NCBI GenBank assembly: GCA_023213395.1
Contig: CM041465.1
Location: 199,275,741 to 199,339,740, forward strand
Direction of reading: 5' to 3'
From: Cycas panzhihuaensis
Taxonomy: Eukaryota; Plantae; Cycadophyta
DNA: 64,000 nt
The position numbers and the translations under genes are program-made. This document shows positions 1 through 42,599 of this stretch, piece by piece (positions within the stretch are counted from its first letter, which is position 1; each line of letters begins with the position of its first letter). The notes beneath the pieces are model-generated. The model ran no database searches. It was not told the origin of the DNA and worked only from the letters and a program-made list of their open reading frames with translations.

Positions 1-1370
1 ATATAAATATTTGATTATGTACATCATGTTTTCCGTTACAAGAACAAAACAAATAGAAATATTACACAATAAATCTTTTTATTTTTTACACACAATATTA
101 AATATTGGAAATAACACATAATCACTTCTCACAACTTGTCCCATGGTCTTTTGGCATACTCTTGACACCTTTATTTAAGAAAATAATCATGACCTAATGA
201 AATTGTGATGAGCATTTAAAAAATCTCCCTTTTAAGATAGAAATAATTCGAAAATCTCTACAAAAATATCTTCCAAATTATGTTTCAAAGAATCTTCCAC
301 CATTACATAATTCTCCTATTTTTTCCAATCTTTTTAAAACATGTTTTTTTTTTAATCACAAGAAACTAACCAATATTCCATCAATTTGCAACCCAAGGTT
401 GCTTACCCTTTCTAAAATGAAATAGAGATTGTTAGGGGCGGAAATAGTGAATATTTCCCCAAGTGTCAATATCTAAGGGTTACTTAATAGAAAATCTTCT
501 GAAATTTCTTGAATAGAATATATTCTTAAGATTCTTGTCCACTTCATGGGGCCAAGTTGTGGAGTCACAGACTTGCGTGCTACATAGGGCAGTTCTATTT
601 AAAAAGGAATATCACGTTAATATTTTGACTGTCAGCGGGTGTCATGGATGCTTTTTGATTGCCCTTTCTGCAACCCAAAAAGTAAAAGTAACCCTAATCT
701 TAGAGCAGTTATAAGGAATGGATGGGTATGGGCATCCAAAGGGACGACATCAGACTTTTGGCAGGTTCTGTCACCCTTCCACTGAGCCGTCACACTTCCA
801 CTTGTCTTCTTTATGTACCGTCAGCTTTTACGTGTCTCAAATACTGTGGATACGGTTTGTGTTGAATCTTATATTGCAGACCGTCAATTTCTATCCCTCT
901 CAGGCACCACGCCAAGCTTATGAAAATATCTGAAATTTCAGGTCTTGGACTTGTGAAATTTGTGTGGCCAGCTTGAGTTTCATTTTCGGAGTTGTCGGTG
1001 ACATAATATCTTCTCCCTGAATGCTGTAATATAATCAGTTTCCAGTAGCAATCTAATAATCCGCCATTATAGTTAAAACAAATTTGTGGCTTGAATCGAT
1101 CAATAAGATTACAGAGCGAATGCATGGATTTATATCATTTGATTTGGTTGCAGGGAGCGTGTTATCGAATCTGGTTTTCCCCTCGCCACTGTATGTTCAC
1201 TTTATAATTATAATTAATCGGTGCGTCGAAATTGTTTGGGATATTCAGTTTAGATGTATGATGTGTTGGTGATCCGGTTGCACAGAACAACTCTCTGGCG
1301 GCAAATCGAAAGAGAATTTCAGAGGATAACCTTACGTCTTCACGTCGCTTAGCACCTCAATTTGAACGTA
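1..1370 (+). repeat. Diverged duplicate of ~59072-60448 (SWEET upstream region to mid exon 3); may extend left of the window
   Basis: Collinear matches, e.g. aataatcatgacctaatgaaattgtgatgagcatttaaaaaatctcc (182-228) vs 59258-59305. Intron-1 text gattacagagcgaatgca[t/c]ggatttatatcatttgatttggttgcaggga is near-identical in both copies. Confidence 0.93.
964..1370 (+). pseudogene. SWEET: Truncated SWEET16/17-like pseudogene (exons 964-997, 1154-1190, 1286-~1370)
   Basis: ATG replaced by GTG (964), then ASLSFIFGVVG and SVLSNLVFPSPL with GT/AG sites kept. Exon 3 has an 11-nt deletion (atagtgaagaa) plus TTA>TAA and TGG>TGA stops. Homology ends at ~1370. Confidence 0.9.
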
Positions 1371-3931: not shown

Positions 3932-6900
3932 TTTTTTTTTTTAATAAGATAAAATAATATTAGAAGGGGTTTTAGCTAGGTCCCCAAACCCTATACAACA
4001 AAGTCATCTGGCTTAAGAGAAATGACCATGACAAGCCCATGGTCTAGACCTAATTAAAGGGAATTCCTCTCAACCTCCCCTGTCTGCCTGCCCAATGTGT
4101 GCATTGATTCTTACGAGACTTAGAAGCTCTTCCGGATAGTCCTCCTTCCATATCTTGGTTCTTTTATTTGAAACTGCCCAATTTGCCAGCCAATCTACCG
4201 CCACGTTCCCTTCCCTATAGGTATGCTAGATCCTGGCCCCCTCTTTGGTTCTCAGAGTATCTTGCGCATCTCTAGTGATCTCCATATTGTTCCACCCTGG
4301 CTCTGCTTCCCCCCTTAAACATCTAATCACATACATGGAATCACCTTCAACGATCATCTTTTGATCCTCCTCTTCATCCATCAAAGCTATCGCCCTGTGA
4401 ATAACCCGCACCTCAGCTCTCTGGTTCGAATGGATGCCTAGATACTCTTCAAAGGCCCACTTTAAAACACCCATATGGTTCCTACAGAGTCTTCCTGCTC
4501 CCGCCTCTCCAGGGTTGCCTTTAGCGGCTCCATCAAAGTTAATTTTTTCCTAGGTTTCTTCTGGAGGGTTCCATTTGATTGCTCTCCTTTTCTCGCTGCC
4601 CCCCTTCGTATGAACTATACCCCAGTCCTCAAAGATCCTCTCTTCTCTTTTGGAGATCCTATTCTCTTTAAGGGGACTCATCATTTCTTGAATACTCTTC
4701 TTGATCTCAGCGACTAGTATGGCACTGGCTGACTCTCTACCTTCAAAATTTCTCATATTGTGTTCCTTCCAAATAATCCAAGTACTTACTGGAAGGATCA
4801 TCTTCCAGCATCTGCCGAGCGTTTTACTCTTAAAAGGAGAGTCCTATGCTATCTACTGGTCTTTCAAAGAGTTAGGAGAAACCCAAGCTAAACCCAGCCT
4901 GGACCAGATATCATCCCAGATTCCCTTAGAATAAGGATAGTGAATCCCAAGGTGGTCCAAGGTCTAAGCATCTTCCTTGCATAATACACACCTGTTAACC
5001 AAATGAAAACCCCATTTCATGAGGTTATCCATTGTAAGGATTTTGTTTTGAAGGCATAACCACCAAAAAGCAGCTATCTTCGGAAGCAACCCCAGTTTTC
5101 AAACCCCAACAAGCATGTCATTCCTGGCCCATCCTTCCCTATTCATTATCAAATTATAACCTTCTTTAACTGTGTATGAGCCCGAAGATGATTGGGGCCA
5201 TACCAAAGAGTCAGAAGAGGGTCGCTTCAGAATATACTGATCTTCTAACACCCTCTTCACTCTCTGAATCTCCTCTTCGAAGCCTTGCAGCTCCTGAAAC
5301 GATCTCCATCACCCGTCCCTGCCCTAGCCCTGCCAATAATGCCTAACTAGATAGTCGAAACTATTCTCATATGCCCTCTTCATTCTGCCTATATTAGGGA
5401 TCTCCTCTAACCTAGAGGGCCCGCACCACTTGTCTTCCCAAAACCTTATGCTTTCTCCATCCCCCAAACTCCATCGGAATCCTTCACATAAGATAGAGTG
5501 TGTGGAGCAGATAGCTTTCCAAATGGGGGATCCCTCAGAGCTACAGTCCTCCTCTAGTAGAAAGTGTTTATCCCTTAAATATTTCCTTGATAGAATTTTC
5601 TCCCAAACAGACCCAGCTTCTTTGGTAAGTCTCCACCCTACCTTGGCTAGAAGGGCTTCATTAAAAAGGCCCAGCCTTCTAACATTAAGACCTCCTGCCC
5701 ACTTAGGTTTGTAAACCTTCTCCCATGATACTGGATGGATTCTGTTTTTATCTTTGACCCCTGACTAAAGAAACCTCTTCATAATGCCCTCTAGGGTAGA
5801 AATCACCTTACCTGGCATCCTAAAAACGGACATTTGGTAAATAGGAATGCTCTGGAGAGAGGCTACCACCAGTTGAATCTTCCCAGCCCAGCTTAGAAGC
5901 ACCCCTTTCTAGCCCGCTAGCTTCCTATTAAATCTACTCACCACGTGGTCCCACAGATTCTTCACCATCTTCCCCACAAAGAGTGGCATTCCCAGATATG
6001 AAGTGGGGAGGGGTCTACTAGGAATCTCCAAAACCCTACTGATCCTTCTCTGCAGCCCTTCCGCTGCATTGATATAGAAGATTGAGCTCTTATCCCAGTT
6101 GATATTTTGATTGGTGGCCCTCTCATAAGCCTCAAGACCTTCTTTCAAAGCCCTAGCCTCCTCCATGGAGGCCCTACACAGAAAGATGTTATCATCAACA
6201 AATTAGTGATGGGTGATATTATCCAAATTAGAAGATGCCTTCAAACTAGATATCCATCCTAGCCTCTAAGCCTCCATTGTTACCCTCCCAAGTAGTTCAG
6301 CCATAATAACGAAAAGGAAGGGAGAGAAGGGGTCACCTTGTCTCAAACCCCTAAAGCCGAGAAAGAAATGTATCGACCTCCCATTAAGAATCACCGAGAA
6401 TGAAACCCTGGATATGCAGCATCTCATCTAATCCCTCCAAACCTCCCCAAAATCTAACGCTTCTAGACAGTCCAACAGACAATCCCAAGCCACCCGGCCG
6501 TAGGCCTTAGACATATATGTTTTGATTATCATGCCAGCCTCCTTCCTATGAAAAGTTGAATGCATTATTTCATGGACAGTAATAATGCCATCCATGATTT
6601 GTCTACCCTTTACAAAGTCATCCTGATTAAGAGAGATAATAGCCGGAAGGCACTCTCTTAGACAGTTTACCAGCATTTTAGCCAGAATTTTATATTTTAC
6701 ATTACAAAGACGGATCGATCTGTAATCTTCCATGGCTACCGCACCCTCCTTCTTCGGGATCAACACCAAGAAGGTGGCTTGCCATTCTTTCAAAATTGTC
6801 CTTCTAAGAAAGAATTCATTTAAAGCCAAAATTAAATCCTCCTTGATAATGTCCCAGAATTCCTTAAAGAACCTAGGAGGAAAACCGTCTGGGCCCGAGG

Positions 6901-7642: not shown

Positions 7643-10600
7643 TGTTAGAATATTAATGTACATTTGATTTATCCCACATGCAAGTGGGTCCTACTCTTCC
7701 ATCATAACTTATATTATAAATACACAATTTTGTGTATCATATAAAAATGATGTTGTTGTAATGATATTTTCTTAATACAATGGAGGTACCTTAAGGGTAC
7801 CGTTCGATCCTCTGAACGTGTTCTGTTCTATTTGCGAAGATTATTTGTGCAGGTTGATTTCCAACATGGTATCAGAGCCAAGTTGAACAAGAGAGTAAGG
7901 TGAAGAGAGCCAAGTTAAACGAGCTTAGGCGAGATGAAGCTAGTTTGAGCGAGGAAGGATTTGATCATTATAGTTTGGTTGATGAAACCCTAGTTCTATG
8001 AAGACTAACATTGATGTGGTTATGGAGAAAACCCTAGTTATTGATTTATCCTCTATCGTGACTATTTGTTATCTGCTAATCCCTATTCCATGCATGAGAC
8101 TTGCAAGAGACGCAGAGATCAAGTTTGCCACGAAAGAGATGACCAAATTGCATATGCGAGAACCAAGTCTAGATAATGTATATACTCTGGCTTCCATAAG
8201 GTAATTTAATAATATATTTTCACCTAGATTTAGCTGCCTCTCTTCAATTCCTTTAATCGCTATAAATATAGCCAGTCGTTATCATGTGGAACCATCGATA
8301 AGCTGCCACTATTTGTTGATTTCTAATGTGTTATAGGCATCGTTTTCTTTGTATTTTCTGTGCATGCTGACTGTTAATTTCCTGATGCCCTTGTGTGGGT
8401 AAACGATTATCGTTTCCGTTGCATCGCCTATGTGATGATAGTTAATCATCTGGTTAATTGAAGACATCCATCCATGATGATTATTTTGTTACTGTGATAA
8501 TGTGGTATCAGCGTGCGTGTTGATGTAACCGTCTACATGATTCGTGTCTGTCTGTGATGGGGTGTTTTAGTCATCGATTGTCAACATAACATCGCCATGA
8601 TGATTTACATTCTGCAGAGTCATTAGTTCCCATCTGAGTAATGATAAACTATCTCCACCGATCTGCGTATCTGTTAGTTGCATAGTGTCTCGTCTTCAAT
8701 CTATGCATTTTGATATAACGCCGCTAGTCTGTGAAAATTTATTCACTATTGTGCATATTTCAAATCGCTCTTAATATATTGATATGTAAATATGTTGTGT
8801 AGTTGCTAATTTATAGTTTGTAGTTATGTGTTGATTCGTTCATGCGTGATACACCCAAGTCGCTTGGGTGATATATACGCCATCTCTCTGCGTACTGTTT
8901 TTGCGTAAATTTTGTCGACTTTGACTGCGTGTTGATATGTCGTTTCGATATAGTTATTCAGCCACCTGCAGATAATTTTATTTGCGCCAACCATTTTATT
9001 GATTTATTTAGAGGCGTCCTATGACACTTTATAATTCACCATTATATTATTCACCTTTTGATTTAACTAAAGTCGCCCTTTTTAATAAAGTTCACCATCG
9101 ATTTAATATTTGGTATTACCTTTTATTTTTTGCCCTTTGTTTCTCTCATATGAAGTTGCTTATTAATACTTATTTTTATATTTCATCAAATTCATATTAA
9201 AATAATATATTTATCTTTAAGGAGATCTTTCTTAAAATGTTTTGATATGGAGATTTGCAAAGGTGGGTATGCATATGTAGCATATGGACTTTATTCAACG
9301 TATTTTTGGGTATGTTTTAGTGGTGATGTATGCATGGGTTGGATGGCAACATAAGGTGTATTTGAGAGGTACGTTGGTGATATAGATAACTCTCTATCAT
9401 GAATCTTTATGAGAGAGTTTTATGATGATGTAAATGGGTGATTTTGAGGCCTTGGATTGTTCTCTTATAAGTGATTGTGTGATAGGTGAGGTTGCCAATG
9501 TTTGATGCTCTCTAGCATGAAAGAGTAATTTGGGTGATGTTGCGATATGAGGTATCTATTTGAGGCTATCATACATGGGCTGCACATGAGAGAGTGAGTT
9601 GGGTGAAGAGACATCTATTGTTTCTCTTGTTTACATGAGTAAGTTGGGTGACTTAGTACTCTTTGGAATGTGATCTTTATGGGCATGATAATTTGACATA
9701 TTTTGATCAATTCGACGGACAAAATTGAGGGCATATCAAGGGCATGAACAAGGTAATAAGAGGGCATTACGATCAAGGTAATGATTGATGAGCAAGTGAG
9801 CTATTGTTACAAGGAAACAATCTTTGGCATTGAGTTGATAGTGGAGTCCTTAGAGTTATGGCCTTATGACGATATGAGTGAGTGATTTTTGAAGTAAGGT
9901 CTTGGTTGATGTGTTGACATGATGACATGAGACGAAGTTTGAGGTTTTCATTATTCATTTGTATGCGATTGCATGAGAATACTTTGATATTGATGAGGTG
10001 ACTGTTGAGGCTTTCTTGTATATATTTCACATGGGAGAGTACCTTGGTAATATGAGACGACATTAACTCATATTTCACACTCTATTGACTTGATGCTTAT
10101 TGTGGATATATGATGAGGTGAGTATGGTCCTTATAAGAGGCATGCAGAAGATGATTTAATAGTGAGAAGAGACGTCTATTATTTCTATTGTATGTGTTTG
10201 CATGAGAGAGTTGATTATGAACCTTGTAACATATGAGGTTACATGACACTTTGTTGGGTGAGTTAAGGAAGAAATTAGGTATGTTTCATGATGTGAACAG
10301 GCAAAGAAGGATGAGTTTTATTAAGGTTAAATAAGTTGCAAGTGTAATGGCATGAGTTGTGTGTTTTGGGTAATCAAGTGAAGTGTATGTCTTGGTAGCA
10401 ACATATGGCATGTATGATCATCATGAGATTTATGAGGCATTGATTTGGTGAAGTGAGTGTTTGGATTCTACGTGACTGGTTTGTGATATGTGAAATAGAT
10501 AAGGCAATGATGCGGTAATAAAGTCAATGATGTGAGATATGAAACATGAGGAAATTTGTTGAGAGTGATCAATAGGCAAGTTACCAATGATAAGTAAGTG

Positions 10601-11922
10601 TATTGACTGAAAAAGGGACGTGGCATGTGGAAATGACATTTACAATCATGGAGGATAATGATGTGGTTATATATGCTCTTGAAACAAATGAATATTACTT
10701 AAGGGATTCATTTCTTCTAGTACCTAAGTGTAATGGTGAAGACTACTTCTTTTGGACAATTAAAATGAGATGTCTATTCATAACTAGAGGTTTGCGGAAG
10801 ATTGTTACTAATGAATATGATATTCCTAAGGATGAAGAAGAAAAGGAAATACTTGATAAGAAAGATAGAAAAGCATTCATTATGATTTGTGCTACATTCA
10901 ATGAGGTTGATCTTCCTTCTAAATTCCATTTTGTCATTCCTATGATTCTACATGCAGGTAATGCGAAAGAAGCTTGGGATTTTCTAAGGGAAGTATTTGA
11001 ACAAACGCTTGAAGAAACACAACGAATGATTGAAAAAGCAATTAAGACTAGTTATGGTACATGAATGAAGAAAGTATCATCAACACTGATGAAACATCAT
11101 GTCAAGATGAAGAATGTCTGAGTACTGATGAAACTTCTACTGTTGAATGCATTGATGAGATTACAGATAAAGACATTGAAAGTGATGAATTGATTTCAAG
11201 AGAAATTGAATCTAATGATCCTATAAAGTATGAGTCTTACATTGATGGCGTTCCTTCTTTAAGCATTAATTCAAGTTCAAAGAGTATACAAGTTGATCAA
11301 GACTCCACTCCTAAGATTGAAGAATTCACTGTTACTCATGGTGATTAAGAATTTATACAGGATAATGATGATAGGCAAGTTGTGATTAAAGATAGTTACT
11401 TACAGGATCTTCATCATACTAGACCAGTCACAATAAGGAAACAACATTTATACTTACTAGAGCAGCTACATTAACATCGTCACTACAGAATTGAAGATGG
11501 AAGTCAAGCTGAAGATATCATCTTACAATGGCATTAGTATAGAATTAAAGACAAAAATCAAGATGAAGACATCATTCTGCAGCAAAGACATCACTACAAG
11601 ATTGAAGACAAGGATCAGGTTGAAGACATCATTCTCAAGACATTTCCAAGGACAAAGCGTTGCAAATACAAATGACCCAAATGTATATTAAGGGGGAGTG
11701 TTAGAATATTAATATACATTTGATTTATCCCACATGTAAGTGGGTCTTACTCTTCCATCATAACTTATATTATAAATACACAATTTTGTGTATCATATAA
11801 AAATGATGTTGTTGTAATAATATTTTCTTAATACAATGGAGGTACCTTAAGGGTATCGTTTGATCTTGTGGAGGTGTTCTGTTCTATTTGCGAAAATTGT
11901 TTATGCAGGTTGATTTCCAACA
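7643..11922 (+). mobile_element. Non-autonomous gag-only LTR retrotransposon (TR-GAG/LARD-like, Copia-type gag)
   Basis: 224-bp LTRs at 7643-7866 and 11699-11922 (TG..CA, ~13 differences by hand count). TSD taagt, PBS tggtatcagagcc at 7867, PPT aagggggag. No pol motifs found. Confidence 0.93.
10603..11698 (+). pseudogene. gag: Copia-type gag N-terminus followed by an acidic, repetitive tail; frameshifted
   Basis: VPKCNGEDYFFWTIKMRCLFITRGL..KKDRKAFIMI..NAKEAWDFLREVF matches Copia gag DUF4219/UBN2-type motifs. The downstream frame has three HHYxIEDxxQxEDIIL repeats. Confidence 0.75.
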
Positions 11923-13209
11923 TAAGTAGTATACACATATTCCTTTTCTCTAGGGTTAATTTCTATCTTTAAGTTAAAAGAATAAAGACTTAGCTATTAA
12001 CACTAAATATTTTAGTGAGTAGACTAGAGAAACCACTCTCTCACTTATCATATTTCTTTCTACTTTTTTCTTTTACTATTACTATTGACTATTCATTTCT
12101 ATGTCATGCTTATCATAAAGTCTTAGAGGTCTCACTCAAAAGTTCCCATTTGTTACAATAAAAGAAAGTCCTTTTGGCCCTCTTGAAGAGAATGTCTTCA
12201 TTTGAGATATTCTTATGTAAATAACTCTTCCTCTAAGAATTGTAGATCAAAAATCATTACCTTCATTTACTTCCATTCATCAATGAATAGAAAGTGATGA
12301 CACTTCATCTTCTTCTTAACCCTCTACATCTTATGAACCACCTCCTTAGGGTGTTATTACTAGATCTATTCTTAATTCTACCTTTGGTTCTAGTTTGTCT
12401 TTATCGGTAGCTCATTATTTAGGTCTCCATCTATTTTTTAGACCCATATTTTCAACAATAATTAATCAATCACATACTCATGATGTTTCTTCTCTGTTAT
12501 GATCTAATAGTTATGGAAAGTTGATATTTTGTTAAAAGTATATTTTATTATTATTATTAGGAAGTGATACATTGAAATTAATATGAATCCAATTTAAGAA
12601 GTCATTATTTTATTATTAATATGATTATTAAAGTTAGTTTTTTAATAAAAAGCTATATTGGCACCTATAAATAAGGGAAACCCTTAAATCATTTTGTAAG
12701 TTTTATTTCTAATTTAATCCTAGCTTTATTTGGCACTTGGTGCCTAAGGTAATTTGTCTATTTAACTTTTATTTTAGTTTTCTTTTTATGTTTTTAGAAA
12801 TAGACCCAATTTAAGATTGTTTCAAGTGGTATTAAAGTTTCATTTTTTGTATACCAAGGACCTACATTGTTGGGAGTATAAACATAAGAATTTTAAAAAG
12901 ATAATTATTAATTTAAGTCAACCAAGTTTGTTGTACAAATTTTAAGTGGTTATACTATAAGTATTAAAGGGAAATTATAAAAATTATAGGGAATTTAGTT
13001 TTGGTCTATTATCCATCACTATCTTTAGGATCTAAAATCTATTACCACAACTTCAAATAGTCATAACTTTAGCTATAGATGTCTAATTAACCTCAAATAT
13101 TTTTTGAATCATGTACCTCGATGTCTACTTTCTATTCGAAGTGGTTTTAGATTAATTAGATATTCTAGTAAAAAGTTATTAGCATTTTAATAACTAGTAC
13201 TACTATAGT

Positions 13210-26900: not shown

Positions 26901-28545
26901 CTAAAACTTTATGGGCAAAGTAATTTTTCTAAGGGTAGGTACTTGTTATGATTTAATATTAATTTGAAAAGTTGGTATTTTATTAGAAGTTAATTTTATT
27001 ATTATTGTTATAAGAAAGTAATACTTTTAAATTAATATAAAATTAATTTTTATATTAGGAATTTGATATTTTATTATTAATATAATTATTTGAGTTAATT
27101 TTTTAATAAGAAGCCATATTAACACCTATAAATAGAAGATACATTTAACTGATTTTGTAAGTTTTATTTTTGGTTTAATCCTAATTTTATTTAGCACTTG
27201 GTACCTAGGGTAATTTGCCTATTTATCTTTTATTTCAATTTTCTTTTTATGTTTTTAGAAGTAGATCCAATTTAGGATTACTTCTAGCGATTCACATGAA
27301 TATTGTTACAACTATGGTGCTTGGGGTACCCAAATGCCACAAAAAGAGAGGCTAAGTAGGGCTAGTCAATTCAACCCATGGGGGAGGTAATAATCTACTT
27401 AGTGAGGAGTCATCTCCGCTAAGACTTCAAGGTTTTAATGTGATAGTTTTGAAATTGGTTAATGCCACAAGGTCATTATATTAGTTTATTATTCCTAAAA
27501 GGGTTGTAAATAAACTTTAAATTAGATCACTTAAGTGAAATACAATTTTATATGCATTATGTGTAATTTCATCTAATTTTAAAAAACCCTAACCCTAATG
27601 CACTCTCTCATTTATATAAAGCAAAGCTCAATGGAGGAGGCTCATTCTTACCTCCCTATTTTATGAGAGTTATTCTTTTTCTCTTAAGTTTCTCTTACTC
27701 CTATATTTACCTTTATATATAGTGCATGGAGATAAAGGCTAGATCCTTTCTTTTCAATTGGTATCATAGTTAGCTTGCATCATATTCCTCACTTGCACTT
27801 GTAATAGATCCATCACTTCCTTCTTCCCCACAATTTATGTGGTTAATGGAGATTGTGTAAGTGGATTTAGAAAAATTTTTAAGTTTTTATTTAGTATTAT
27901 TTGCTTTCCCTCCTTTCACTTTTATAAGTTTTGGAAGCATAATACAAGGGATTGTAAGACTCAAGAATTCTAATCCTTTGGTAGCTATTTCCTCATTTCC
28001 TATTATTCTTTTCTTTCACCTATTTTTGTCTATTTGATAAGAGGAAAAGTTATCAAAATTTTTCTATCATTTAGATTTGTAAAGGAAAATGTTTGTGTTA
28101 GAATGTTAATGTAATCTTTATGTTCTTTTCTAAAGTTCATATTTAAGTCACATGTCTAAATGTATATTTAAGTGATCATAACGTTTAAACTTTAATGTTT
28201 ATTAATTAACTTATGTGAAAGGTGGTTGAAATGTAGAACTGCATTTCAATGAACCTTTTGTTGTATAAATTCATCTCCTAGATTCAAGGAGATGGTTCCA
28301 GAAATCTAGGAAGGTTGTCTATATCTCTTTTCAAAGGTTGGTTTAAGTGTTAGGTGGTTTACCTGTTTGGTATTCTGTTCACAATAATTCTTAATAAAAA
28401 TAGAAATTTAGGAGGTGGTTTTTCTTCCCTAGAAGGGGTTTTCCACCTGTCAACCTGTGTACATGTGTAATTTCATTTGCTTTCCTGTGGTTTTATATTT
28501 AATCTGATCCTATGATGTTATGCATGTGCCTATTCTCACATGGTA

Positions 28546-28796
28546 TCAGAGCTAATATCATTGCCATTCTCATCTAAGAGCACAACCCAGTCTTTTGGCA
28601 TGATCCGCTGCAGTATTTTGATATCTTCCCCTTCAATCCGCAACATCACATCATTGGTTTTCTTTGGATTTGATCTGATCTGTATATCTTCAACACTACA
28701 CTACCACTAGAGCTTCTTCATATACTCTTGAACTACCATTTGCACACTAGTAGTCCTGTTTTTACCAACTATTAATAGTCTAACTATAAGCACCCT
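28546..28796 (-). pseudogene. rlmH-like: Captured uninterrupted fragment of an RlmH-like SPOUT rRNA methyltransferase, antisense to the element
   Basis: Translates RVLIVRLLIVGKNRTTSVQMVVQEYMKKL*W*CSVEDIQIRSNPKKTNDVMLRIEGEDIKILQRIMPKDWVVLLDENGNDISS, matching plant RlmH-family motifs (TVGK..EY..KL..RSNP..DWVVxLDExG). Confidence 0.85.
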
Positions 28797-29214
28797 ATTT
28801 TTAAATGATGAAATTAATTTTTACCACGGATCAATCCATGCTTGTCAAATTTGCCTCTCTGTGAATGGGGTAATTGGAACCGTTTGAACGAGAGGACCTT
28901 GAATTTCTTTTTCTGGCCAATGCATTGCTCCCCATAATCTAATTTATGGACATCAACGCCTATATATTCTCGAGCTCTACCTGTCAAACTCAAAGCCTAC
29001 CTACCCGGTCACTGATGGACCGTTACAGTGGTGCAGTGTACCAATACCCTGTTAACATAATATGCTTAAATACGGTTGATCTAACTGCTACAACGTTTTC
29101 CAAAACTCTGGTAAGCTTTATGGCCCTCGGCCTGGTTGCATTATAGTATAGCCTGCAGAGTTTATTGTCCACCCTCCACAATTCTGACACTACTGTAAAT
29201 AGTCACGACACTCA

Positions 29215-29391
29215 TTTACCACTAGTATTTCTTCTGTGACGGCTCTTTCTTTGGCCCTTAGTTATCCAACACTGGCAGTTGCTCCACATGTTTTCATTAA
29301 TAGTTATAAGAATGTTCTAATTGTTGCAATTGCAACAGAGTATTCATTCCCATAGGCTGAGCAAGTTAAGGAGTTCTTGAAGGATCTAAGT
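29215..29391 (+). pseudogene. RPLP0: Captured fragment of 60S acidic ribosomal protein P0 (uL10), C-terminal-side segment
   Basis: Translates [58 protein letters not shown]; plant P0 reads ..[52 protein letters not shown]. Confidence 0.93.
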
Positions 29392-29392
29392 A

Positions 29393-29506
29393 CTCAACTT
29401 GATGCCATTACTCATGGGAAATGTTGGGCTTATTTTTACAAAAGATGACCTTAAAGAGGTTCGAGAGGAGGTGGCCAAATACAAGGTGGAAGCCCCAGCT
29501 CATGTA
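29393..29506 (+). pseudogene. RPLP0: Captured fragment of ribosomal protein P0 (uL10), N-terminal-side segment, placed downstream of the C-terminal piece
   Basis: Translates [38 protein letters not shown]; plant P0 reads [38 protein letters not shown]. Confidence 0.93.
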
Positions 29507-30293
29507 GTCCCAAATATGCTCCTACAAAATGTAAGAGACCTATAGTGAAGGACTCAGATGTTATGTCTGCAAAGAGGGAACAGACACCTGCAAATACCTG
29601 TTACCAGGCTCCGGAGGTCTAGCTTCTGCCTAACATTCCCCATAGGCATGATGATGGGAATCGAGATTTTGGAGTCGATTTGTACCTTATATTGAAGATC
29701 TACAAAAGATCTATCTCCTCCGTCCATCGCATGTTCTCCGGAATGCCATTTAGATCTTCATCCTCGTCGTCTAGCCTGTATACAAAGCACCGTGACCATG
29801 GAAATTACCAGGTAGGGTTTCTTACGCCCTTACCCCCCTCGGACCCCAATCGATTTTTTACTTTGATTTTATTTTTTCAAAACTAATACTCCGTCGGGTC
29901 TGTCTGCCCAATTCCTCTTTTTTTTTTTTTTTTTTTTTTTAAATAAAACCTAACCACCCCTCCTTTATCAAATTTTGATTTAAATAAAGCAAAGACCCCC
30001 TTTTACATTAAGATACAAACCCCCCTTTACCTTATAAACTCTCATTTACAAATCAAAATCTATATCTCCCCCTTTTAAATAACCTTTAGTACTTAAAATC
30101 AACATTTCTTTAATGTATGACATTTAATTAATCATTACAAAATCCTTTCCCCCCTTATATAGTATCACATTTATTTATAAAATTAAAATAAACTATTCCC
30201 CCCCGACTAATATCTTACTTTATATTCTATTTGTTTATATGTCATATATAAGGTATATATAACCTTTAAAACACTCATTATAAGATTATTTAT

Positions 30294-30405
30294 ATACCTT
30301 TCTCAGTTTTTTAGCTAAGATCAAATGTAGCATCTATTCTTATCAGTTTAATATATGATATGTGGATTATTAAAACTCTATGATATTAAATTCAATACTT
30401 TTTAA
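30294..30405 (+). ncRNA. U2: U2 snRNA 5' half (pseudo-copy) inside the Copia leader
   Basis: ATACCTTTCTCAGTTTTTTAGCTAAGATCAAATGTAGCATCTATTCTTATCAGTTTAATATATGATATGTGG matches 64/72 positions of the plant U2 5' end, starting at nt 1. Degenerate stem IIb and Sm region follow; stems III/IV are absent. Confidence 0.9.
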
Positions 30406-30857
30406 TTCACATTTATATACCTTTTTTTTTTTAATAAAGCTTAATTATTTAAGGACAATTAATATTTTTATAAATATCTTAAAAATTAGTTTGATATCTT
30501 CAAAATTATTACCATCTTAAAGTATCTAACTAAATCAATTGCAATATATAATTAAGTGCTTTAATTTCATATTCTTAGTATTTAAACTTTTTAAGTGAAC
30601 AATTTTTTTATAAAGGGTGACTTTTTATTTTAAAAGGGATTGGTTATTTCTCAGATCAAAGAAGGATTATTTGCTTAAGAACATGTGATTCTTTTCTTAA
30701 GGGAAAAGCAAGTAATGTGTATTACAATGCTTTCTTTTTCATTTTTTTAAAATTATGCTTGTTAAATTAATCTAATGATTAGTACTGTTAGTAAGTGATT
30801 ATTCTTTTAAATCACCTTCATATTTTTCATCTTCAATCAAATCTCATAACTCCCAAT

Positions 30858-33800
30858 ATGGCATTAATGCTAGGGACAATCACCTGTATTTCAATTCCAG
30901 TATTAATCGGCTCAAACTATGCCAACTGGAGGAATTGCATATCCCATCAGTTCAAACAGCAAAAGATATGGAGATATGTGAGAGGTGAATTTCAAAAACT
31001 AAAAGTAGATACTACAGATAGTTACATGGTATATCTAATGAACTCAAATACAGCCTTAAGTACCATATTAAACTCACTCTCACCAGAAATCAGTAGGCAG
31101 TTTTCTAAAACAGATGACTTGGCCAGTGTCTAGAAAACCTTGCAAGAAAAATATGACAAGGTAGATACACATCAAGTGGTTGTCCTAGAATAACAATTGT
31201 ATAACCTTACTTTTGACAATTTTTTCAATATTGAGGATTTTTTAATTAAAATTTAATTAATTAATAAAGATCTAGGAAACTGCATCAAATCTAAAACTAA
31301 AGAAGGTGATATTGAGAAAATAATCACGCATGCTAGAGAAGACGACACACTCGTATGTCTTACAGTAAACAAACTACCAAAACACTTTAATTTCTACAAA
31401 ACTACCAGATAACAAGCTAGCAACCCACCTATAACATTCAATCAGTTGACAAACCAGCTGATTGAACATCAGACAATGTTAATTTAAACAGGCGTATTAA
31501 AAGATCCTTCACAGGTTTTGTTTTCTAAAACTAAGCCACAATTTAAAAATAAGCAATAGAATAATTTTCATAATAATCCAAAATTTTAGAAACTTCATAA
31601 AGGTTCACCATCTAATTTACAAAACAATGTAAAATATTCTAGTCCAACTAAACACCAGAATACTTCCAATCAATTCTTTCATAATAGAAACAACACAACT
31701 TCTTCTCAAAACACTAGTTGTGCCTATTATCATAAAAAAGGCTATACTATTGATGTCTGTAGAAGTAGAATAGCTTTAGAAGCATGGAAAGCTTCCAAGG
31801 GATTGCAAAATAGACCTCAATCCCATTTCCAATCCCATTCTCAATCACGAACCTGAAATCGTCAATCTTATAATCGCTCTTTAGTAGTAACAACTTTTGT
31901 ATTTATTGCCCCTTCAAATCAACCATCACAGTGGATCCTTGACTCTGGTGCATCCCATCACATGACTGGACACCAGAAAAATTTAACCACTTATCAATCT
32001 AATACGAACTCTGAAGAAGAGATTTCTTTTGGAAGTAGTAATCAACTTAAAGTTAAAGGATCAGGTGATGTTATCTTAAAAGATGGTTCAATCAAGGATG
32101 TTTTTTACGTACCTGGTTTGTTACCAAACCTACTCTCTATCTATCAAATCTGCTAGAAAGACCTTATCGTCAAATTCTAGAAAAATAAATTTATCATTAA
32201 GGAACCATTAAACAAATTCAAACGTATTACCTTAGGACCCGTTGATCATAATACAGGTCTCTATAATCTAACAAGTCTTCAAAATAACAAAACAAAATCT
32301 TTTAGTACCTTTATTGCCAAATCTGACTCAATCAATAAACTTTGTCATGCAAGATTTGGCCATACAAGTTATGGTAAACTGTAATATTTAAAGAAGCATG
32401 AAATGGTTCATGGTCTACCACCCTTAAACACTGTTTATGGTGTTTGTGAAGCCTGTGTGACAGGTAAACAATACATGGATCCATTTCCACATAAAACTTA
32501 ATTCAGAGCAACTGCTCCACTTGAACTTGTTCACTTTGACATATGTGGACCCTCTCATGTAACATCATACTCAGGTTCTTATTATTTTGTTACATTTATA
32601 GATGATTATTCAAGAAAATGTTGGGTTTATATGCTCAAAATACGTAGTCAAGTATTTGACATTTTCGTTGAATATAAAATATTAGTTGAAAATTAATCAA
32701 ATTCAAAAATCAAAATATTTCGATCTCATAATGCTAATGAATATTTAAGTGGAAAATTCACTTCTTTCTACAAATCATATGGAATTAGGTTCCAACATTT
32801 TGTTGCATACACACCTCAACAAAACAGTGTTACTGAACGAAAAAATTATACTCTTGTTGAAATGACTCGTTGCTTGTTACATGCAAAGAATCTAGATTTA
32901 AAATTATGGGCAGAAGTAATTAATTGCTCTAACTATTTATTAAATTATTTACTTAGTAAATATCTATAGAACATTACTCTAGAACAAAAATGGTCTGGAA
33001 AAAAACCATCTGTCAATCATTTACGAATCTTTGGCAGTATTGTGTGGGGACATATCTCTCATGAAAAACATAAAAAATTAGATCTAAAAAGTCAAAAATA
33101 CATCTTCGTGGGATACAGTGAAGAGAGTAAAGCTTATAGACTCTTGGATCCAATCATGCATCAAATTTCTATTTTATGTGACATAATATTTGATGAAGAA
33201 GGATCTTCTTCAACATCTACTTATGTAGAACTTCTTGTTAAAAGTTTGTTAACCAACACCTGTTTGGTTGACCCCTCTAATAAACAAGTTGATCTAGAAG
33301 TTATAGAATCTTTATCAACTCAAGTCTAAAATTAGACTCTATCTAAACCCACTGAAATAGATCCTTCCTTTCAAGCTAGTTCATCAAATCAACCTGCATC
33401 TTCAGATATAGTTACTCACAAGCAACCTGTTTGGGCAACAAAAACGTTTGCTGATGCTAGATCTGATGTAGGTAATCCTACTGATACTAAACGCACACAT
33501 GCATAAAAACTACATGCTAATTTTGCCTTAATAGTAAAAATAATGGACAACAATGATCCCAAAACATTTAAATAAGCTAGCAACAATCTTGTATGGCAGG
33601 ATGCTATGTAGACTGAATTTGATGCCTTAATTAAAAATTTAATCTGGGATCTTATTCCTCTCCTACCTGGGAAAAATGTCATCGACTGTAAATGGGTATA
33701 TAGGACAAAATATAACTCAACAGGCGCAGTTGAAAAATATAAAGCTCACCTTATTGCAAAATGATTTTCACAAATAGATTGCATTAATTATAATGAAACC

Positions 33801-35090
33801 TTTGCCCCTATTGTAAAGATGAATATAATCAAAACAATTATTGCTCTTGCAGCCAAATTTGATTGGGAAATCCACCAAATGGATGTTAAGAGTGCTTTCT
33901 TAAATGGTGATCTCAAAGAAGAGATCTATATGTCTCAGCCACCTGAATTTATTAAAAATCCTAATTTAGTTTGCAAACTTAAAAAATCCATTTACGGTTT
34001 AAAACAAGTTCCTCGAGCTTGGTATACCAAAGTCGACAATTATTTAATTCATATTGGATACACTAGATGTATTAGTGATCCAAATCTTTATTTTAAACGT
34101 AAAAATAAAAATCTTACTATTCTAATCCTCTATGTTGATGACATTATCATTACTAGATCATCAACTCATAATTTAAAATCTACTTTAATGAATAAATTTG
34201 AAATGACCGATTTAGGTCTACTACATTACTTTCTTGGTTTACAACTTCATCAAAATCATTTAAATATAACTATATCTCAACTTAAGTATATTCTAGACTT
34301 AATTCAGCAGTTTAACATGGAAAATATTAAACTCGTATCTAATCTGTTACAATCAAGAGTCAAACTATCTACTGATTGTTCATCACCTTTATGTGATCCT
34401 ATATTATATAGATAACTGATTGGCAGTCTTATCTATCTAACTCACACCCGCCCTTACATTTTCTATGCTATCACTTTATGTTCCCGCTATATGCAACAGC
34501 CACATTAATCTCATTGGAAAGCAGTTAGATGTATCTTACGATATCTAAAGCATACTGTATTTTATGGTTTAATTTATAATTTTTGTAATAAACCTCTAAT
34601 GTTAACTGGATATATTGATTCTGATTGGGTAGCTGATATAACTAATTGTAAATCTACTTCAGGTTATATATTTTTTATAGATTCCTCACCTATTACTTGG
34701 TCTAGTAAGAAAATGCAGGCACTTACTTTATCCACAACTGAAGTAGAATATCGTGCACTTGTTGAAGCTGGTAAAGAAGCACTTTGGCTCAAATCTTTAC
34801 TAAATAAAATTGGGCTGTCTCTAATCTCTTCCATTGAACTTAAAGTTGATAATCAAGGTACAATTACTATAGCTACAAATCTAGTTTTACATTGTAAGAC
34901 TAAGCATATTGAATTACATCAACATTTTATTCACAATTTAGTTACTGATAATCTTATTTCTTTGTCTTATTATCCAACAGATCTACAAATTATTGATATT
35001 CTTACGAAGTCTTTAACTGAAGCAAAGTTTTTAAATCTCAGAGATTTATTGCAGATAAAAGAAGTCTCTATCAAATGGGGGTCACCATGA
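30858..35090 (+). pseudogene. gag-pol: Copia gag-pol remnant of the cargo-carrying element
   Basis: IPVLIGSNYANW (gag), WILDSGASHHMTG (PR), LELVHFDICGP (INT), HQMDVKSAFLNG and LYVDDII (RT), GYIDSDW and TKHIELHQHFI (RH). Stops are mostly TAA/TAG. Confidence 0.93.
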
Positions 35091-38000
35091 TGAAGACCTT
35101 CTTTTTCCACAACACAAAAGTTTACATTAAAGGAGGATGTTAGAATGTTAATGTAATCTTTATGTTCTTTTCTAAAGTTCATATTTAAGTCATATGTCTA
35201 AATGTATATTTAAGTTATCATAATGTTTAAACTTTAATGTTTATTAATTAATTTATGTGAAAGGTGGTTGAAATGCGGAACTACATTTCAACGAACCTTT
35301 TATTGTATAAATTCATCTCCTAGATTCAAGGAGATGGTTCCAGAAATCTAGGAGGGTTGTCTGTATGCCTTTTCAAAGGTTGGTTTAGGTGTTAGGTGGT
35401 TTACCGATTTGGTATTCTATTCACAGTAATTCTTAATAAAAATAGAACTTTAGAAGGTGGTTTTTCTTCCCTAGAAGGGGTTTTCCACCTATTAACCTGT
35501 GTACATGTGTAATTTCATTTGTGTAATTTTATTGTTTTAGCGAAAACTATTTTTTTATTAAAACAAAAAAAAAAGAAGAAAATATCTTCCTTTTTTAAGG
35601 CTTTAAATCTCATTGTAAAAGTGAGTGGAAAACACTTAGATTAGAGTAATATCTAGTTCATTCACTTTACTTCTTAGTATTTCATTTTAGCACTCCAAGT
35701 AAGCACTCTAAGCAAGTACTCCAAAAGCACTCCATTTCCAATTACATGTACGTTTGATATAAATTTGATAATTTTTTCACTATTTCTAAAGGAACACATC
35801 GTGTACATTATTTTCTACTATCTTATGCATATACACCTACTCACCAAGGTTGAAATACCTTGGTTGGTAGAATGTCATACCATAAAGGAGGTGTAGGTTT
35901 CAAGTGGGGACTAGACTTAACCAGAATATTGGTGAGGCTTAGTTAACCATGCCATCATGCCCCAATAAGGGATCATTCTAATAACTAATTAGGAAAACTA
36001 AAACTTTAATATAAAATTAAAATATACCCACTCAAATATCTATCATAGCCATAGCTATATACATATGAATCTTTGAAAGAGGTATATTACTGCTTATTGG
36101 TGAACAAGATTGGGATTAGAAGTACATGGGCTCCATTATGACTTGGATTTCATCATCAAGCATAATTACAAGTATCACATGTGAATGCTAACTTAATTCT
36201 ACTAGAAGCCTAAACATCCTTTACCAACCTCATCTACATGTTGGACACAAGTTAGAGGTTATTGGGTTAACTACACATCATATATTTGAGTTTCACAATT
36301 ATGTACACCCATTAATGTTAATATAAATATTGGTCTATAATCTTGTATATTGACCATTCATATATTTGTAAATAGTGATCTATAGTACAATCACAGTACT
36401 TCATTCCTGTTACGTCAGGATAATTTTGTCATAAGTGTTAGTGGCTAATTTTTATCATAGTGTTTCTCATATTCCTACCACATCAAGTTAATATTTGTCA
36501 CAAGTATTGGTGACTTTTCTCTAAGTTGCTCCCTTCATCTTTGAGTAACCATTCTTACTTCTTTATTCTTCCTTTTGCTACACTATTTCATTACACCTCC
36601 TATTTGTAAATTATGATTAGTCATTTATTGCCATCACTTTCATAGTCTCTTATTTATTTCGTTCCTTCTCAAAAGGTACCTTGTCTTCATAGTTCAAGCA
36701 AAAGGTGAACTACATTTTTAAAAGGAAAGAAAATTAGGACATGCATTTCATTGGTGTCAGAAATGCTATAAAGTATAAAGGTCTTTAAAGAGATCACCTA
36801 TAGCTTACACCAATTATTGTTGCCACTACCACACCTGCCTTTAGAGTAACTCCTCTAACTCCTCCTACCGATGCTTCAGGCAAATGCTAATGAGAACTTT
36901 ATGATGGTAAAATCTATACAGGGATACTTCTTATCACTAATTATTCCTTATATAACCTCATTGATCAAGCTATATATGATATAGTATGAAAAGTTCTTGA
37001 AGTTCATAAGAAGAACTTTAACACTAAATCAACCTTAGAATTTGTTTAATTGGTGTTGAAGATGAATAAATCAAAAATACAGAAAGAATACACAAACGAG
37101 ACAATAAATCTCCTTCATCCCATTAAGTAAGTTATCGATAAAGACTTCAAGACTCAATGCATTACATGGGCTTTCTTAATTCAGTCATGTCTCCATATCC
37201 TAGATTACAATAATATACTCAGAAGTCTTCAATCTAGTGGCACTTTGAATACCCTAAACTTTAAGGATCTTGTTGATAAGTTTATTAAATTTAATAAGAC
37301 CTTTGATACTAACTTTGACACTACATCAAATCTTATCGATGCTACTTTTGAAGTGGAAGAAGATCTTTTCTATACAAAAAATCAAGGTCAACCCTCTCAT
37401 AGAGGTGGTAATTCCTACAGAAGTGTTAGAAGTAGATAAAAGGGGCAATGTCTTAATGGTCAACAAGCTCTCTAACACCAACAAAAATAGTCTCAAGGCC
37501 AAGGCTAAAATAATCAACTTGGACCCAAATCTAGCAATCAGAGATAATCTAACTAGCCCTGAACTTCTTATGGGACTAGAAATCAAATAATTGTATATGA
37601 AAGGTGTCATACAAAAGGACACTATGTCAAAAATTATAGAACTACCACTAAGAACCTACCAAACTATCAATAGTGCCATGGTGTACATAATGTTAATGAT
37701 ACTTCTTTTGAAGATGCTTTTAGTAGAATGTAATTTGCTCGTGTAAACCTTCAAAGAATTAGGGCTACTTCATCAAATATTATTAATAAATTCACTAAGT
37801 ATATTGAGGCTCATTATGGTTATGCTTATTTACTTTTACCTCCACCACTTAGAGTTTTTAATAGTACCATCTTAAATACTTCATCTCGGATCATGGATAC
37901 TGAAGCAACACAATATATGACTTATCATCACCAGTTCTTTTAGGATTTTAACTCTAAAGTTCATGGTGTTGTACACATGGATGAAAAATCATCTCATCTA

Positions 38001-41000: not shown

Positions 41001-42599
41001 ACATGACTAAAAATCTTTTATTTCATGATCATACTAAACATATAAGTATGAAAGTCCATAGGATTAAAGAATTAGTTCATGATGACATGATTTAATTGGA
41101 GTACTACCCTATAGTAAATCAAGTGGTTGATATCTTCACCAAACCACTATAAAAGATGAAGTTCGAATAGTGTTGAAGGTAGCTCAGTCTTAAAGTCTCC
41201 ATTTCCAATTGATTAAAGGAGATAACAATAGGTCTCATTTGTGAAAACTCCTTGTAGATGTAAAAGGACAAGAGCAAGTCTCTACTCTATCCCATTTTAT
41301 GCAAACCCTTTATGGTCATGAAGGGATAAGGGTTGTACCATTTAGAAAAATCAGAACCTATGAAAACCAGAAAGGGCATGGAGGATGACCAAATGGTATA
41401 TAGAGACTTAGTAGATTATAGCTATAAAACTCATTATATTGATTAGCTATCTAGCTTGATTCAAAGAGCCACTTAAGTCAATTTAGTAGATTAGAAAATC
41501 TGTGGGTTTCCATCTCCATAAGGGTTTCCCATAAAAGTATCATAGTAGTTTGCTTTATAAGAGGCTCAAATGAAGACCTCATAAGAAAGAATAAAATAAG
41601 ATGAAATGACCTTATACCATTAAGGTGGGGATTGAAATGGGTTAATCCCATAATGTCATTACATTAGTTTATTATTCTAAAAAGGGTCTTAAATAAACTT
41701 TGAATTAGATCACTTAAGTGAAATACAATTTCATGTGCATTATATGTAATTTCATCTCATTAGGGAAACCCTTAACCCTAATGCACTCTCTCATCTATAT
41801 AAAGCAAGATCAATAGAGGAGGATCATTCTTACCTCCCTATTTTAGGAGAGCTACTATTTATCTCTCAAGTTTCTCTTGCTCTCATGTTTGCCTTTGTGT
41901 ATAGTGCATGGAGATGAAGTCTAGATCCTCTCCTTTTAGGTTCATCACAAGTGGTATGAGAGCCAAGACTTGGGTTCAAATCCTATTTAGGACAATTCCA
42001 CTTATAGAGGTAATAGGGTGATGTGTATAAATGCCACTAATATGTATGAATATTCTATAGTTGGGGCCTTTGGAGTGCCTAAATGCTAGTGACAGCAAGG
42101 TTAGGTAGGGTTACCCCATTCGAGCTATGGGAAAGGTAATTGTTTATTTAGTGGGGAGATATCTCCATTAATACTTCTAGGTTTTGATATAACAATTTGG
42201 CATATTCTATATTAATTATAATTTTTATGTGTACTAGCTATATAGGACTATTTTTTAAAATAACACCTAACTCTAATTTATAAATTGATTCATAATTTAT
42301 ATCTTAATAATCAATATATTAAACTTTTAATAATCTTAATTATTTAAATCAAAATATTAGTACTATATTGGCATTGATTCAACAACAATAAAGCATCCAA
42401 TAATCCATATAAGATTCTCAAGCTTCTTAATTAGGTGTCGATCCATAACTTTTCTAGCATTTAAATTCACTTAATCTAAGTTATCAGTTAGGTTTATCTT
42501 CTTCTTATTTAAAGTTTTCATCTCAACTTATTACATTATAAGTTGTTCTTTCATAAAACCCCTTGGGGGTACTTAGCCTTTAAATATTACAACAAGGGT

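Follow-up and report, generated by a model that had tools for sequence, protein, structure and literature searches.

An inactivated Ty1/copia element with host RNA in its leader

The window, the 64,000-nucleotide stretch of Cycas panzhihuaensis DNA analyzed here, contains an old, inactivated and once autonomous Ty1/copia retrotransposon on its forward strand, in whose 2.3 kb leader, from the primer binding site (PBS) to gag, lie pieces of host RNA. The element opens with a 445-bp 5′ LTR (28096–28540, TG…CA), the CA end of which directly precedes a PBS that matches the initiator tRNA-Met exactly (TGGTATCAGAGC, 28541–28552). A single gag-PR-IN-RT-RNase H frame of 1410 codons extends from the gag ATG at 30858 to 35090, with Pfam domains in the order Retrotran_gag_2, Pol_BBD, rve, SH3_retrovirus and RVT_2, and is followed by a polypurine tract (AAAGGAGGA, 35129–35137) directly before the 3′ LTR (35138–35521). 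The LTR pair, the initiator tRNA-Met PBS, the polypurine tract and the gag-PR-IN-RT-RH order are together those of Ty1/copia. The frame carries 22 internal stops (TAA, TAG and TGA) and not one frameshift, and the LTRs align in direct orientation (28096–28479 with 35138–35521) at 94.3% identity over 384 bp, 18 of the 22 differences between them being transitions.

The initial annotation had described an originally autonomous, otherwise complete Copia enclosing the cargo. Its former autonomy is borne out by the single-frame gag-pol with full domain order, and its completeness by the LTR pair, PBS, gag ATG and domains, with the exception of the 3′ LTR, which lacks its last 61 bp, so that the right flank, and hence any 5-bp target-site duplication (TSD), is not readable. 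Sites for tRNA-Met priming occur six times in the window versus 0.21 expected by chance. The leaders of the five other elements with such a PBS gave no Pfam match, a weak negative, and neither a second copy of the leader nor a tRNA gene was found within the window.

Spliced mRNA, antisense mRNA and snRNA pieces

Two adjacent pieces of the leader derive from P0 (uL10) mRNA. Piece A (29212–29391, sense) encodes amino acids 217–276 with one in-frame stop and has 388 library matches, piece B (29393–29506, sense) encodes amino acids 79–116, and each matches wheat P0 in the PDB with an E value of 9e-15, in agreement with the two P0 fragments recognized at the outset. Piece A crosses the EYLK|DPSK site, and piece B the PLLV|GNVG and AKYK|VGAP sites, without an intron; these predicted intron sites were placed with the help of mis-modelled proteins that belong to other plants, and not with the host's own P0 gene, at points where independent gene models skip, start or turn unlike P0. 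Piece B follows immediately on piece A in a permuted order, and the A|B junction is tight (0–2 nt); contiguous genomic DNA cannot be the source of such a junction. A back-splice (circRNA) origin of the permutation was considered and rejected, as piece A ends three codons beyond the predicted exon edge.

The piece nearest the 5′ LTR (28542–28700, reverse strand) is an antisense coding fragment of an RlmH-like SPOUT methyltransferase. Its sole Pfam match is PF02590 (SPOUT_MTase, positions 31–82, 53 aa) with an E value of 1e-4 and 22.8 bits, which falls below the family cutoff of 27 bits; we treat the piece as a fragment of a family member and not as a gene. The best PDB match is the RlmH-family protein TM0844 (E 0.17), in an alignment that reaches the SS(D/E) residues. 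The antisense RlmH-like fragment proposed earlier is probably correct. A protein-relative search with this piece returned no match, and SH3-like look-alikes from the ESM Atlas were discarded as fragment noise. Read in reverse complement, the PBS 3′ end together with one further base gives the last three codons of the fragment (S-S-D), and the frame appears to overlap the PBS by 8–9 nt, as judged from the protein alignment alone (three residues). A frame that runs into the PBS in this way suggests a microhomology junction.

The adjoining block (28701–29064) has no Pfam or PDB match, and contigs of other organisms cross its left edge at 28700 (28598–28775) and stop at 29066. It may continue the RlmH-like mRNA upstream, likewise in antisense, given an IVGK-like motif seen by eye at 28710–28790. 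An extension of the RlmH homology itself to ~28790 was rejected as a by-eye reading that no tool supports.

Closer to gag, a decayed sense copy of U2 snRNA from nt 1 to ~115, through the Sm-site region, occupies 30294–30408. Rfam RF00004 matches 30294–30401 with 63.6 bits against a gathering score of 46 (E 6e-11), starting at model position 1 and covering only the 5′ half (to about 98–115, the 3′ limit of ~115 at 30408 being read by eye), which confirms the half U2 snRNA that had been noted here. A 14-nt exact direct repeat brackets the block; the left copy (ATTTATATACCTTT, 30288–30301) ends with 8 nt that are U2 nt 1–8, and the right copy lies at 30411–30424. The U2 stems are mutated, and the branch-point-pairing GUAGUA is GTAGCA here. 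A U2 snRNA gene was rejected, as the block is not full length (about 190 nt) and its stems are mutated; no convincing upstream USE was seen by eye.

The leader cargo includes real host RNA: P0 mRNA in two pieces, an antisense part of an RlmH-like mRNA, and U2 in its 5′ half. With P0 in spliced form and U2 beginning at nt 1, the cargo comes from cellular RNA and not from genomic DNA, as had been supposed. The further supposition that all cargo belongs to translation or RNA processing is drawn from three donors, with ~1 kb of the cargo lacking any match, and carries no statistical weight.

Parts of the mosaic in related organisms

In three related organisms, several distinct contigs per run match the cargo at 88–90% identity. 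One of them spans 29004–29248, and with it two junctions, exactly as in the window, and another crosses 28700; at least part of the mosaic therefore exists elsewhere. At differing sites the window mostly has A/T where the contigs have G/C, which indicates that this copy decayed by itself. Among the contigs listed, none bridges the PBS|RlmH junction. We also considered whether the leader could be an assembly artefact, a chimeric join of unrelated reads in a region that is dense in repeats. Given that the joins at 28700, 29065 and 29215 recur in independent contigs of other organisms, and that the frame, LTRs and PBS are coherent, such an artefact is barely credible.

The summed contig depth of the cargo is ~1000-fold below that of the LTR and gag-pol, in depths that are explicitly not copy numbers, and most relatives therefore lack the cargo. 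Identical junctions in other copies, named at the outset as support for inheritance, are seen in part, as two joins in one contig and a third that is crossed. Within the leader, an AT-rich part with six C5-7 runs (29941–30293, sense, summed depth 200–1400) is in more copies than the cargo, and the AT-rich part that continues to gag (30409–30857, sense, 21% GC, no CpG) reaches the leader maximum (summed depth 600–5000) and is presumably native to the element. Abundance climbs between the cargo next to the PBS and the part of the leader with U2, and serial capture is suggested by this climb only, with the same reservation that depths are not copy numbers.

A protein-relative search with the gag piece found no match and one with the protease piece found proteins of 41–54% identity only; two metagenome scans, one using the PBS|RlmH junction and one the LTR core, gave no match; and none of the RNA runs contains the stretch.

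Decay and the remaining leader blocks

The P0 pieces have CpG observed/expected ratios (o/e) of 0.16–0.19, compared with 0.34 for gag-pol and 0.10 for the LTR, and most of the amino-acid changes in P0 are of the kind that G>A and C>T produce. The claim that cargo and pol underwent the same G>A/C>T decay holds in qualitative terms, with 29650–29920 exempt: here 11 CpGs are kept (o/e about 1.1), the number also counted in a CpG-rich block at 29686–29917, while the rest of the element has lost most. A later arrival at the DNA level, or gene conversion, would account for this CpG-rich stretch better than capture together with the other pieces.

The cargo blocks outside P0, RlmH and U2 have neither a Pfam match at E values up to 1–10 nor a meaningful PDB match. 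A pseudo-frame of ~140 codons (about 28830–29236, sense) had been read as coding; its 4 stops in ~135 codons, versus ~8 expected for this base composition, are within the range of chance, and neither Pfam nor PDB gives a match. Another supposedly coding-like piece (29504–29918) is equally without one, including its first part (29504–29685), a block that is abundant in another organism, where a 388 Mb run has a 207-nt contig of 88% identity at depth 39.5. Within the CpG-rich block, a short stretch near 29824 is high-copy, with a depth of about 1000 versus 12–30 at 29887. The T23 run at 29918–29940 (sense) does not adjoin any identified piece. An extended homology between 29880–30300 and 30400–30860 was tried and rejected, its transition-tolerant score of 70.5 being below the shuffle mean of 75; the T-run plus an AAATAAA similarity is all that remains of it.

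Several of these observations bear on a DNA-level origin of the mosaic, in which a double-strand break or nested insertion occurred in the leader of one copy after integration and was filled with short pieces of DNA or cDNA, either as filler DNA of break repair or from a Helitron or Pack-type transposon with previously acquired gene fragments, and the result was then amplified or simply decayed. The discrete 151-bp block at 29065–29215 is the sole matched part of two contigs (918 nt and 592 nt) in which both flanks are unlike the window, and hence occurs in other sequence contexts. The 29650–29920 stretch is far less CpG-decayed than its surroundings, as a later arrival would be, both orientations occur among the pieces, whose sizes (115–180 bp) resemble those of exons, a T23 run sits inside the leader, and the cargo is missing from most relatives. 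Against this origin, spliced P0 and a U2 that begins at nt 1 imply templates of RNA or cDNA, and the repeats found around the cargo include no TIRs, TSDs or Helitron-like ends. Diverged copies that share junctions with the window suggest that the mosaic was propagated, and a cargo that is flush with the PBS, with an in-frame overlap, would be rare for random insertion. On balance we regard a DNA-level patchwork as rather unlikely.

Two specific vehicles of this kind can be set aside. Pack-MULE and Pack-CACTA transposons capture DNA and have TIRs; here the cargo is spliced and there is no TIR or TSD, so the Pack-type label of the initial annotation is an analogy only. A Helitron with gene fragments is disfavored by the spliced state of the pieces and by a general repeat search that found no bracketing hairpin among the inverted repeats. 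No TSD, TIR, poly(A) or tandem structure belonging to the cargo pieces themselves was found, in line with the original reading.

The decay of the cargo also bears on the idea of a working "Pack-Copia", in which the host RNA serves as an adaptive device, as a source, through antisense or hairpin transcripts, of siRNAs against housekeeping genes or as a shield from silencing, or in which the U2 half binds splicing or Sm factors or has a packaging role. The greater abundance of the U2-bearing part of the leader relative to the cargo would suit this idea. However, decay in the cargo keeps pace with that in the remainder of the element or exceeds it, the stems and branch-point motif of U2 are mutated, the window copy is dead, no RNA run contains the stretch, and the three identified donors have no significant functional theme. 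In addition, TEs with captured fragments in Platycladus have no methylation advantage, according to a gymnosperm survey (PMC13477047). We therefore consider an adaptive device very unlikely; no present function is implied for a single dead copy without evident function.

A proposed route for capture during reverse transcription

Pickup of the cargo by template switching in reverse transcription is the most likely explanation: the suggestion of microhomology at the PBS, the intronless P0 pieces and the nt-1 start of U2 all point to RNA templates. We favor, as probable though well short of settled, a scheme in which the leader patches are cellular RNA gained during reverse transcription in the virus-like particle of a Copia sub-lineage. 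For the sense patches (P0 twice and U2), reverse transcriptase would, while making the minus strand, switch from the element RNA to a host RNA packaged with it and then return to the element RNA via short homology. In the case of U2, the enzyme would reach the 5′ end of the RNA and re-anneal on the ATACCTTT motif of the leader, leaving the 14-nt direct repeat.

The RlmH patch may have entered by a different step. The 3′ end of plus-strand strong-stop DNA (…ATCAGAGC) could anneal to GCUCUGA(U) in an mRNA, which corresponds to the RlmH-like codons Ser-Ser-Asp/Glu, instead of to the minus-strand copy of the PBS, and the annealed strand would then be extended toward the mRNA 5′ end. Such mis-annealing would explain the antisense orientation of the RlmH piece, its flush position at the PBS and the placement of N-terminal-ward codons farther from the PBS. 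As P0 and U2 are in sense orientation, this plus-strand model cannot account for the whole mosaic. Insertions would survive in the leader only, because elsewhere they would ruin the LTR, PBS or gag-pol. For a while the chimeric element would have gone on transposing, giving rise to several copies with the same junctions, and the window copy would then have decayed at its site through C>T and G>A transitions.

A broader version of the plus-strand step is speculative, and we would not expect it to prove correct: Copia lineages of this genome may load host RNA at one point, immediately 3′ of the PBS, by mis-annealing of strong-stop DNA to mRNAs with GCUCUGA-like sequences, each event adding an antisense patch that reaches to the mRNA 5′ end and pushing older patches toward gag. 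If true, capture would be specific and recurrent, would explain the 5′-exon bias of TE cargo in gymnosperms and would create antisense transcripts of host genes.

Comparison with known systems

Capture of host sequence by LTR retrotransposons is already documented, in Bs1, in LTR-mediated retroposition and in gymnosperm surveys, and since template switching to host RNA is a known process, the window element is a detailed example and not a new kind of system. Small structured RNAs have also been joined to retroelements by template switching and then inherited, as in U6/L1 chimeras and in Cassandra TRIMs, which carry 5S rRNA in their LTRs. These involve other retroelement classes and positions than the window Copia; U6/L1 chimeras place a full-length U6 on a 5′-truncated L1, whereas here the 5′ half of U2 lies in a Copia leader. 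U6/L1 chimeric retrocopies are covered in bioRxiv 10.1101/2025.02.02.635956.

Plant examples of captured host sequence include Bs1, Veju and BARE-2 (PMC13317346). Like the window element, maize Bs1 contains partial, intronless pieces of several unlinked host genes in a chimera that was propagated (PMC13317346, PMC5131818). Unlike it, Bs1 has three transduced gene fragments, no pol and a hybrid ORF, whereas the gag-pol of the window Copia was complete and its pieces, one of them antisense and one an snRNA, lie in the non-coding leader from the PBS onward. LTR retrotransposons can also form multi-donor chimeras via microsimilarity-dependent template switching (PMC5131818). In this LTR-mediated retroposition (Tan et al. 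2016, PMC5131818; Ty1 in yeast), retrotransposon-flanked mRNA pieces from multiple donors have, as in the window element, no poly(A) or TSD of their own. Short homologies occur at the switch points there; in the window, such homology may exist at only two junctions (PBS|RlmH and the U2 5′ end). There, the mRNA replaces part of the internal ORFs, whereas the window Copia loses nothing coding.

Retroviruses package pre-snRNAs, those of U2 among them, and their recombinants can take up patches of host RNA through microhomology (PMC4997597). The resemblance of this packaging and "patch repair" to the window element extends to the U2 cargo and perhaps to chance-microhomology patches at the junctions (PMC4997597, PMC4752605), with the difference that those cases concern animal retroviruses in culture, and the present one a plant Copia, fixed in the genome, with several patches in a row. 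For gymnosperm giga-genomes, PMC13477047 describes LTR retrotransposons with intact domains and ancient exon fragments, about 400,000 such fragments per genome in TEs with a bias toward first and second exons, and at least two fragments in 13.7% of host TEs; the survey appears not to cover PBS-relative position, orientation, junctions or snRNA cargo.

Seen against these systems, the window element is a clear junction-level case of the shuffling of host RNA by LTR retrotransposons, which combines spliced mRNA, permuted mRNA and snRNA, and in which the first cargo junction lies on the PBS itself. Should the PBS overlap recur in other copies, it would point to plus-strand transfer as the entry point for antisense gene fragments and so offer a mechanism by which gymnosperm genomes came to contain exon fragments in such very large numbers.

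A decayed copia element in a stack of Copia-type elements

The element carrying the cargo, as we call the host-RNA-like pieces of its leader, is a Ty1/copia retrotransposon that was complete at insertion and later decayed by transitions, in agreement with the initial annotation. Its LTR direct repeats (28096-28479 and 35138-35521, + strand) are 94.3% identical, with transitions making up 18 of the 22 differences. The 5' LTR extends to 28540, ending in a terminal CA, and is followed immediately by an initiator tRNA-Met primer-binding site (PBS; TGGTATCAGAGC, + strand, from 28541), and a polypurine tract (AAAGGAGGA, + strand) lies directly upstream of the 3' LTR. Because the 3' LTR lacks its final 61 bp, the target-site duplication (TSD) of the element is unreadable. 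A single gag-pol frame (+ strand, ATG at 30858 to 35090) encodes Retrotran_gag_2, Pol_BBD (protease), rve, SH3_retrovirus and RVT_2, then an RNase H-like tail, and is interrupted by 22 internal stops (TAA, TAG or TGA) and no frameshifts.

The window is AT-rich (~33% GC) with abundant LTR retrotransposons throughout, and is a stack of Copia-type elements. Six tRNA-Met PBS sites with 0-1 mismatch are present against 0.21 expected (7867, 13426, 28541 and 41952 on the + strand; 48001 and 57911 on the - strand), most adjoining LTR pairs (7643/11699, 13206/18224, 43875/48024 and 27449/41632). Direct repeats of 83-88% identity (27449-27754/41632-41936 and 12594-12826/27055-27287) flank the element, and since the copy at 41632-41936 has a PBS 3' of it at 41952, the studied Copia sits between LTRs of other elements. 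A 4.3-kb element at 7643-11923, with a PBS at 7867 and LTRs of 94% identity, lacks pol and has a gag-like ORF at 10594-11061 only; its ~2.8-kb leader carries a CpG-rich, G-skewed stretch (8350-8950, 9000-11000), and its open frames gave no Pfam match. An open frame at 54149-54382 (+), resembling by eye a Ty3/gypsy integrase core, lies antisense in the long leader of a minus-strand Copia (PBS 57911-57922) and had no Pfam match at E up to 0.01. Further CpG-rich, higher-GC stretches at 1000-1350 and 59450-61850 could be genes or young insertions.

Host-RNA-like pieces in the leader

Between the PBS and the gag ATG, the initial annotation had described a mosaic of captured host RNAs, of which the two P0 fragments and the half U2 snRNA are borne out, and the antisense RlmH-like fragment is probably right, its score being below the cutoff. 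P0 (uL10) piece A (29212-29391, +; aa 217-276, one stop) matches wheat P0 at E 9e-15 and has 388 matches among 1.84 billion representatives, the canonical plant P0 being P0032; piece B (29393-29506, +; aa 79-116) matches P0 at E 9e-15. The two are permuted in order, with a gap of 0-2 nt at their joint. Many mis-modelled plant P0 proteins in the representative library share three break points: after PLLV, where two models drop the next ~23 residues and one begins; before VGAP, where the same two resume and another begins; and after EYLK, where five continue into unlike sequence. Read from these protein models of other plants, the breaks would mark P0 intron sites. Piece B spans the PLLV and VGAP sites and piece A passes the EYLK site by three codons (KDLS versus KDPS of P0, a C>T change), with no intron at any of the three. 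A back-splice (circRNA) origin of the permuted order is not supported, as the end of piece A lies beyond the exon edge.

The sole Rfam match in the 64 kb is a U2 snRNA (30294-30401, +; 63.6 bits versus a gathering threshold of 46), represented by its 5' half from model position 1; by eye it extends to ~nucleotide 115, taking in the Sm-site region, and GTAGCA replaces the GUAGUA that pairs with the branch point. This block lies between two exact copies of a 14-nt direct repeat (ATTTATATACCTTT, at 30288 and 30411), whose final 8 nt are U2 nucleotides 1-8. By our own estimate, ~0.05 such 14-mer repeats are expected by chance in the leader, and the position of this one is suggestive, not proof. 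Taken together, the missing P0 introns, the permuted joint and the U2 start at nucleotide 1 point to processed RNAs as the templates.

The RlmH-like fragment (28542-28700, -; profile positions 31-82) matches PF02590 at E 1e-4 with 22.8 bits, below the 27-bit cutoff, and its top PDB match is TM0844 (E 0.17); the assignment is probably right. The alignment stays in frame through S-S-D, residues whose codons are reverse-complementary to ATCAGAGC(T), the PBS 3' end. Since SS(E/D) is conserved in the RlmH family, donor and PBS probably had 8-9 nt in common at the junction, judging from the protein alignment.

Long open frames in the remaining blocks (28701-29064, 29065-29215, 29504-29685 and 29686-29917) matched nothing in Pfam or PDB, and a ~140-codon pseudo-frame proposed earlier, with 4 stops versus ~8 expected, does not exceed chance. 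The CpG island-like block 29650-29920 has 11 CpGs in 233 bp (o/e ~1.1, top 1-2% of the window), unlike the CpG-depleted remainder of the element, and could be a later arrival or the product of later conversion. A short stretch within it, near 29824, has a contig depth of ~1000, with flanks at 12-30. A contig of depth 39.5 from another organism's small (388 Mb) run matches block 29504-29685 at 88%; the block is relatively far commoner in that run than in the 6 Gb ones and thus represents, in that organism, either a high-copy repeat or sequence at organelle level.

Distribution of the cargo among related copies

Close relatives were not found by protein searches or by two metagenome scans. Outside copies were therefore represented by Logan contigs of four runs matching 28000-33999 at a likeness of at least 85%. 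Summed contig depths were 6,000-61,000 for the LTR, 12,000-110,000 for gag-pol, 600-5,000 for 30200-30799 (U2 and AT-rich leader), 200-600 for 29800-30199 and 6-130 for the cargo at 28600-29799; these are not copy numbers, and only the three-orders-of-magnitude contrast is used, from which it follows that the cargo is absent from most relatives of the element. The gradient is compatible with, though not proof of, stepwise gain with U2 oldest and the PBS-proximal cargo youngest. Within the LTR, a 42-nt core (28412-28453) stands out by its extreme abundance in each of the four runs, with many contigs diverging just before and after it; some copies skip 28454-28522, and the U5 end of the family is variable.

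The cargo itself is covered at 88-90% identity in three organisms, by several different contigs per run, and these independent contigs make an assembly artefact unlikely. One contig (29004-29248) crosses the joints at 29065 and 29215, one (28598-28775) crosses 28700 and one stops at 29066; two longer contigs contain only 29065-29215, set in a different context, and could represent a donor locus or a further mosaic. At differing sites, A or T usually stands in the window against G or C in the contigs, indicating that this copy decayed independently. A functional siRNA or shield system, entertained in the initial annotation, has no support here: the stretch is absent from every RNA run looked at, cargo and U2 are decayed, and three donors make no theme, of translation and RNA processing or otherwise.

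Proposed mechanism and comparison with known captures

No TIR, TSD or tandem structure was found around the whole cargo; TSDs or poly(A) tails of the single blocks had been named beforehand as marks of later insertion. A DNA-level patchwork or nested mosaic transposon would suit the 11 CpGs kept by block 29650-29920 inside an otherwise CpG-lost element, but is weakened by the spliced P0 pieces, the cargo start flush with the PBS, the lack of recognisable transposon termini and the apparently propagated junctions. Under capture from RNA, the sense patches (P0, U2) would arise by copy-choice onto co-packaged RNAs during minus-strand synthesis, with return via short homology. Such patching of host RNA into recombinants, along with packaging of pre-U2, occurs in retroviruses (PMC4997597), and animal and yeast LTR retrotransposons form multi-donor chimeras via microsimilarity-dependent switching (PMC5131818). 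For the antisense patch, the PBS sequence at the 3' end of plus-strand strong-stop DNA would anneal to a complementary mRNA stretch, and the DNA would be extended toward the mRNA 5' end. Such annealing would account for the orientation, position and polarity of the RlmH fragment, and the antisense patch at the PBS is better explained by this route than by minus-strand copy-choice.

Transduced sequences are usually sense, according to one review (PMC7264820), and we found no description in the literature of a PBS-proximal capture route, a PBS-overlapping antisense junction or snRNA cargo. Gene-fragment capture by LTR retrotransposons is already established, with plant cases including Bs1, Veju and BARE-2 (PMC13317346) and surveys in rice and sorghum, as cited in PMC13317346 and PMC7264820. 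In a 2026 survey, captured exon fragments number ~400,000 per gymnosperm genome and are biased to first and second exons, with at least two fragments in 13.7% of host TEs (PMC13477047). The element is a well-resolved further example of such capture.
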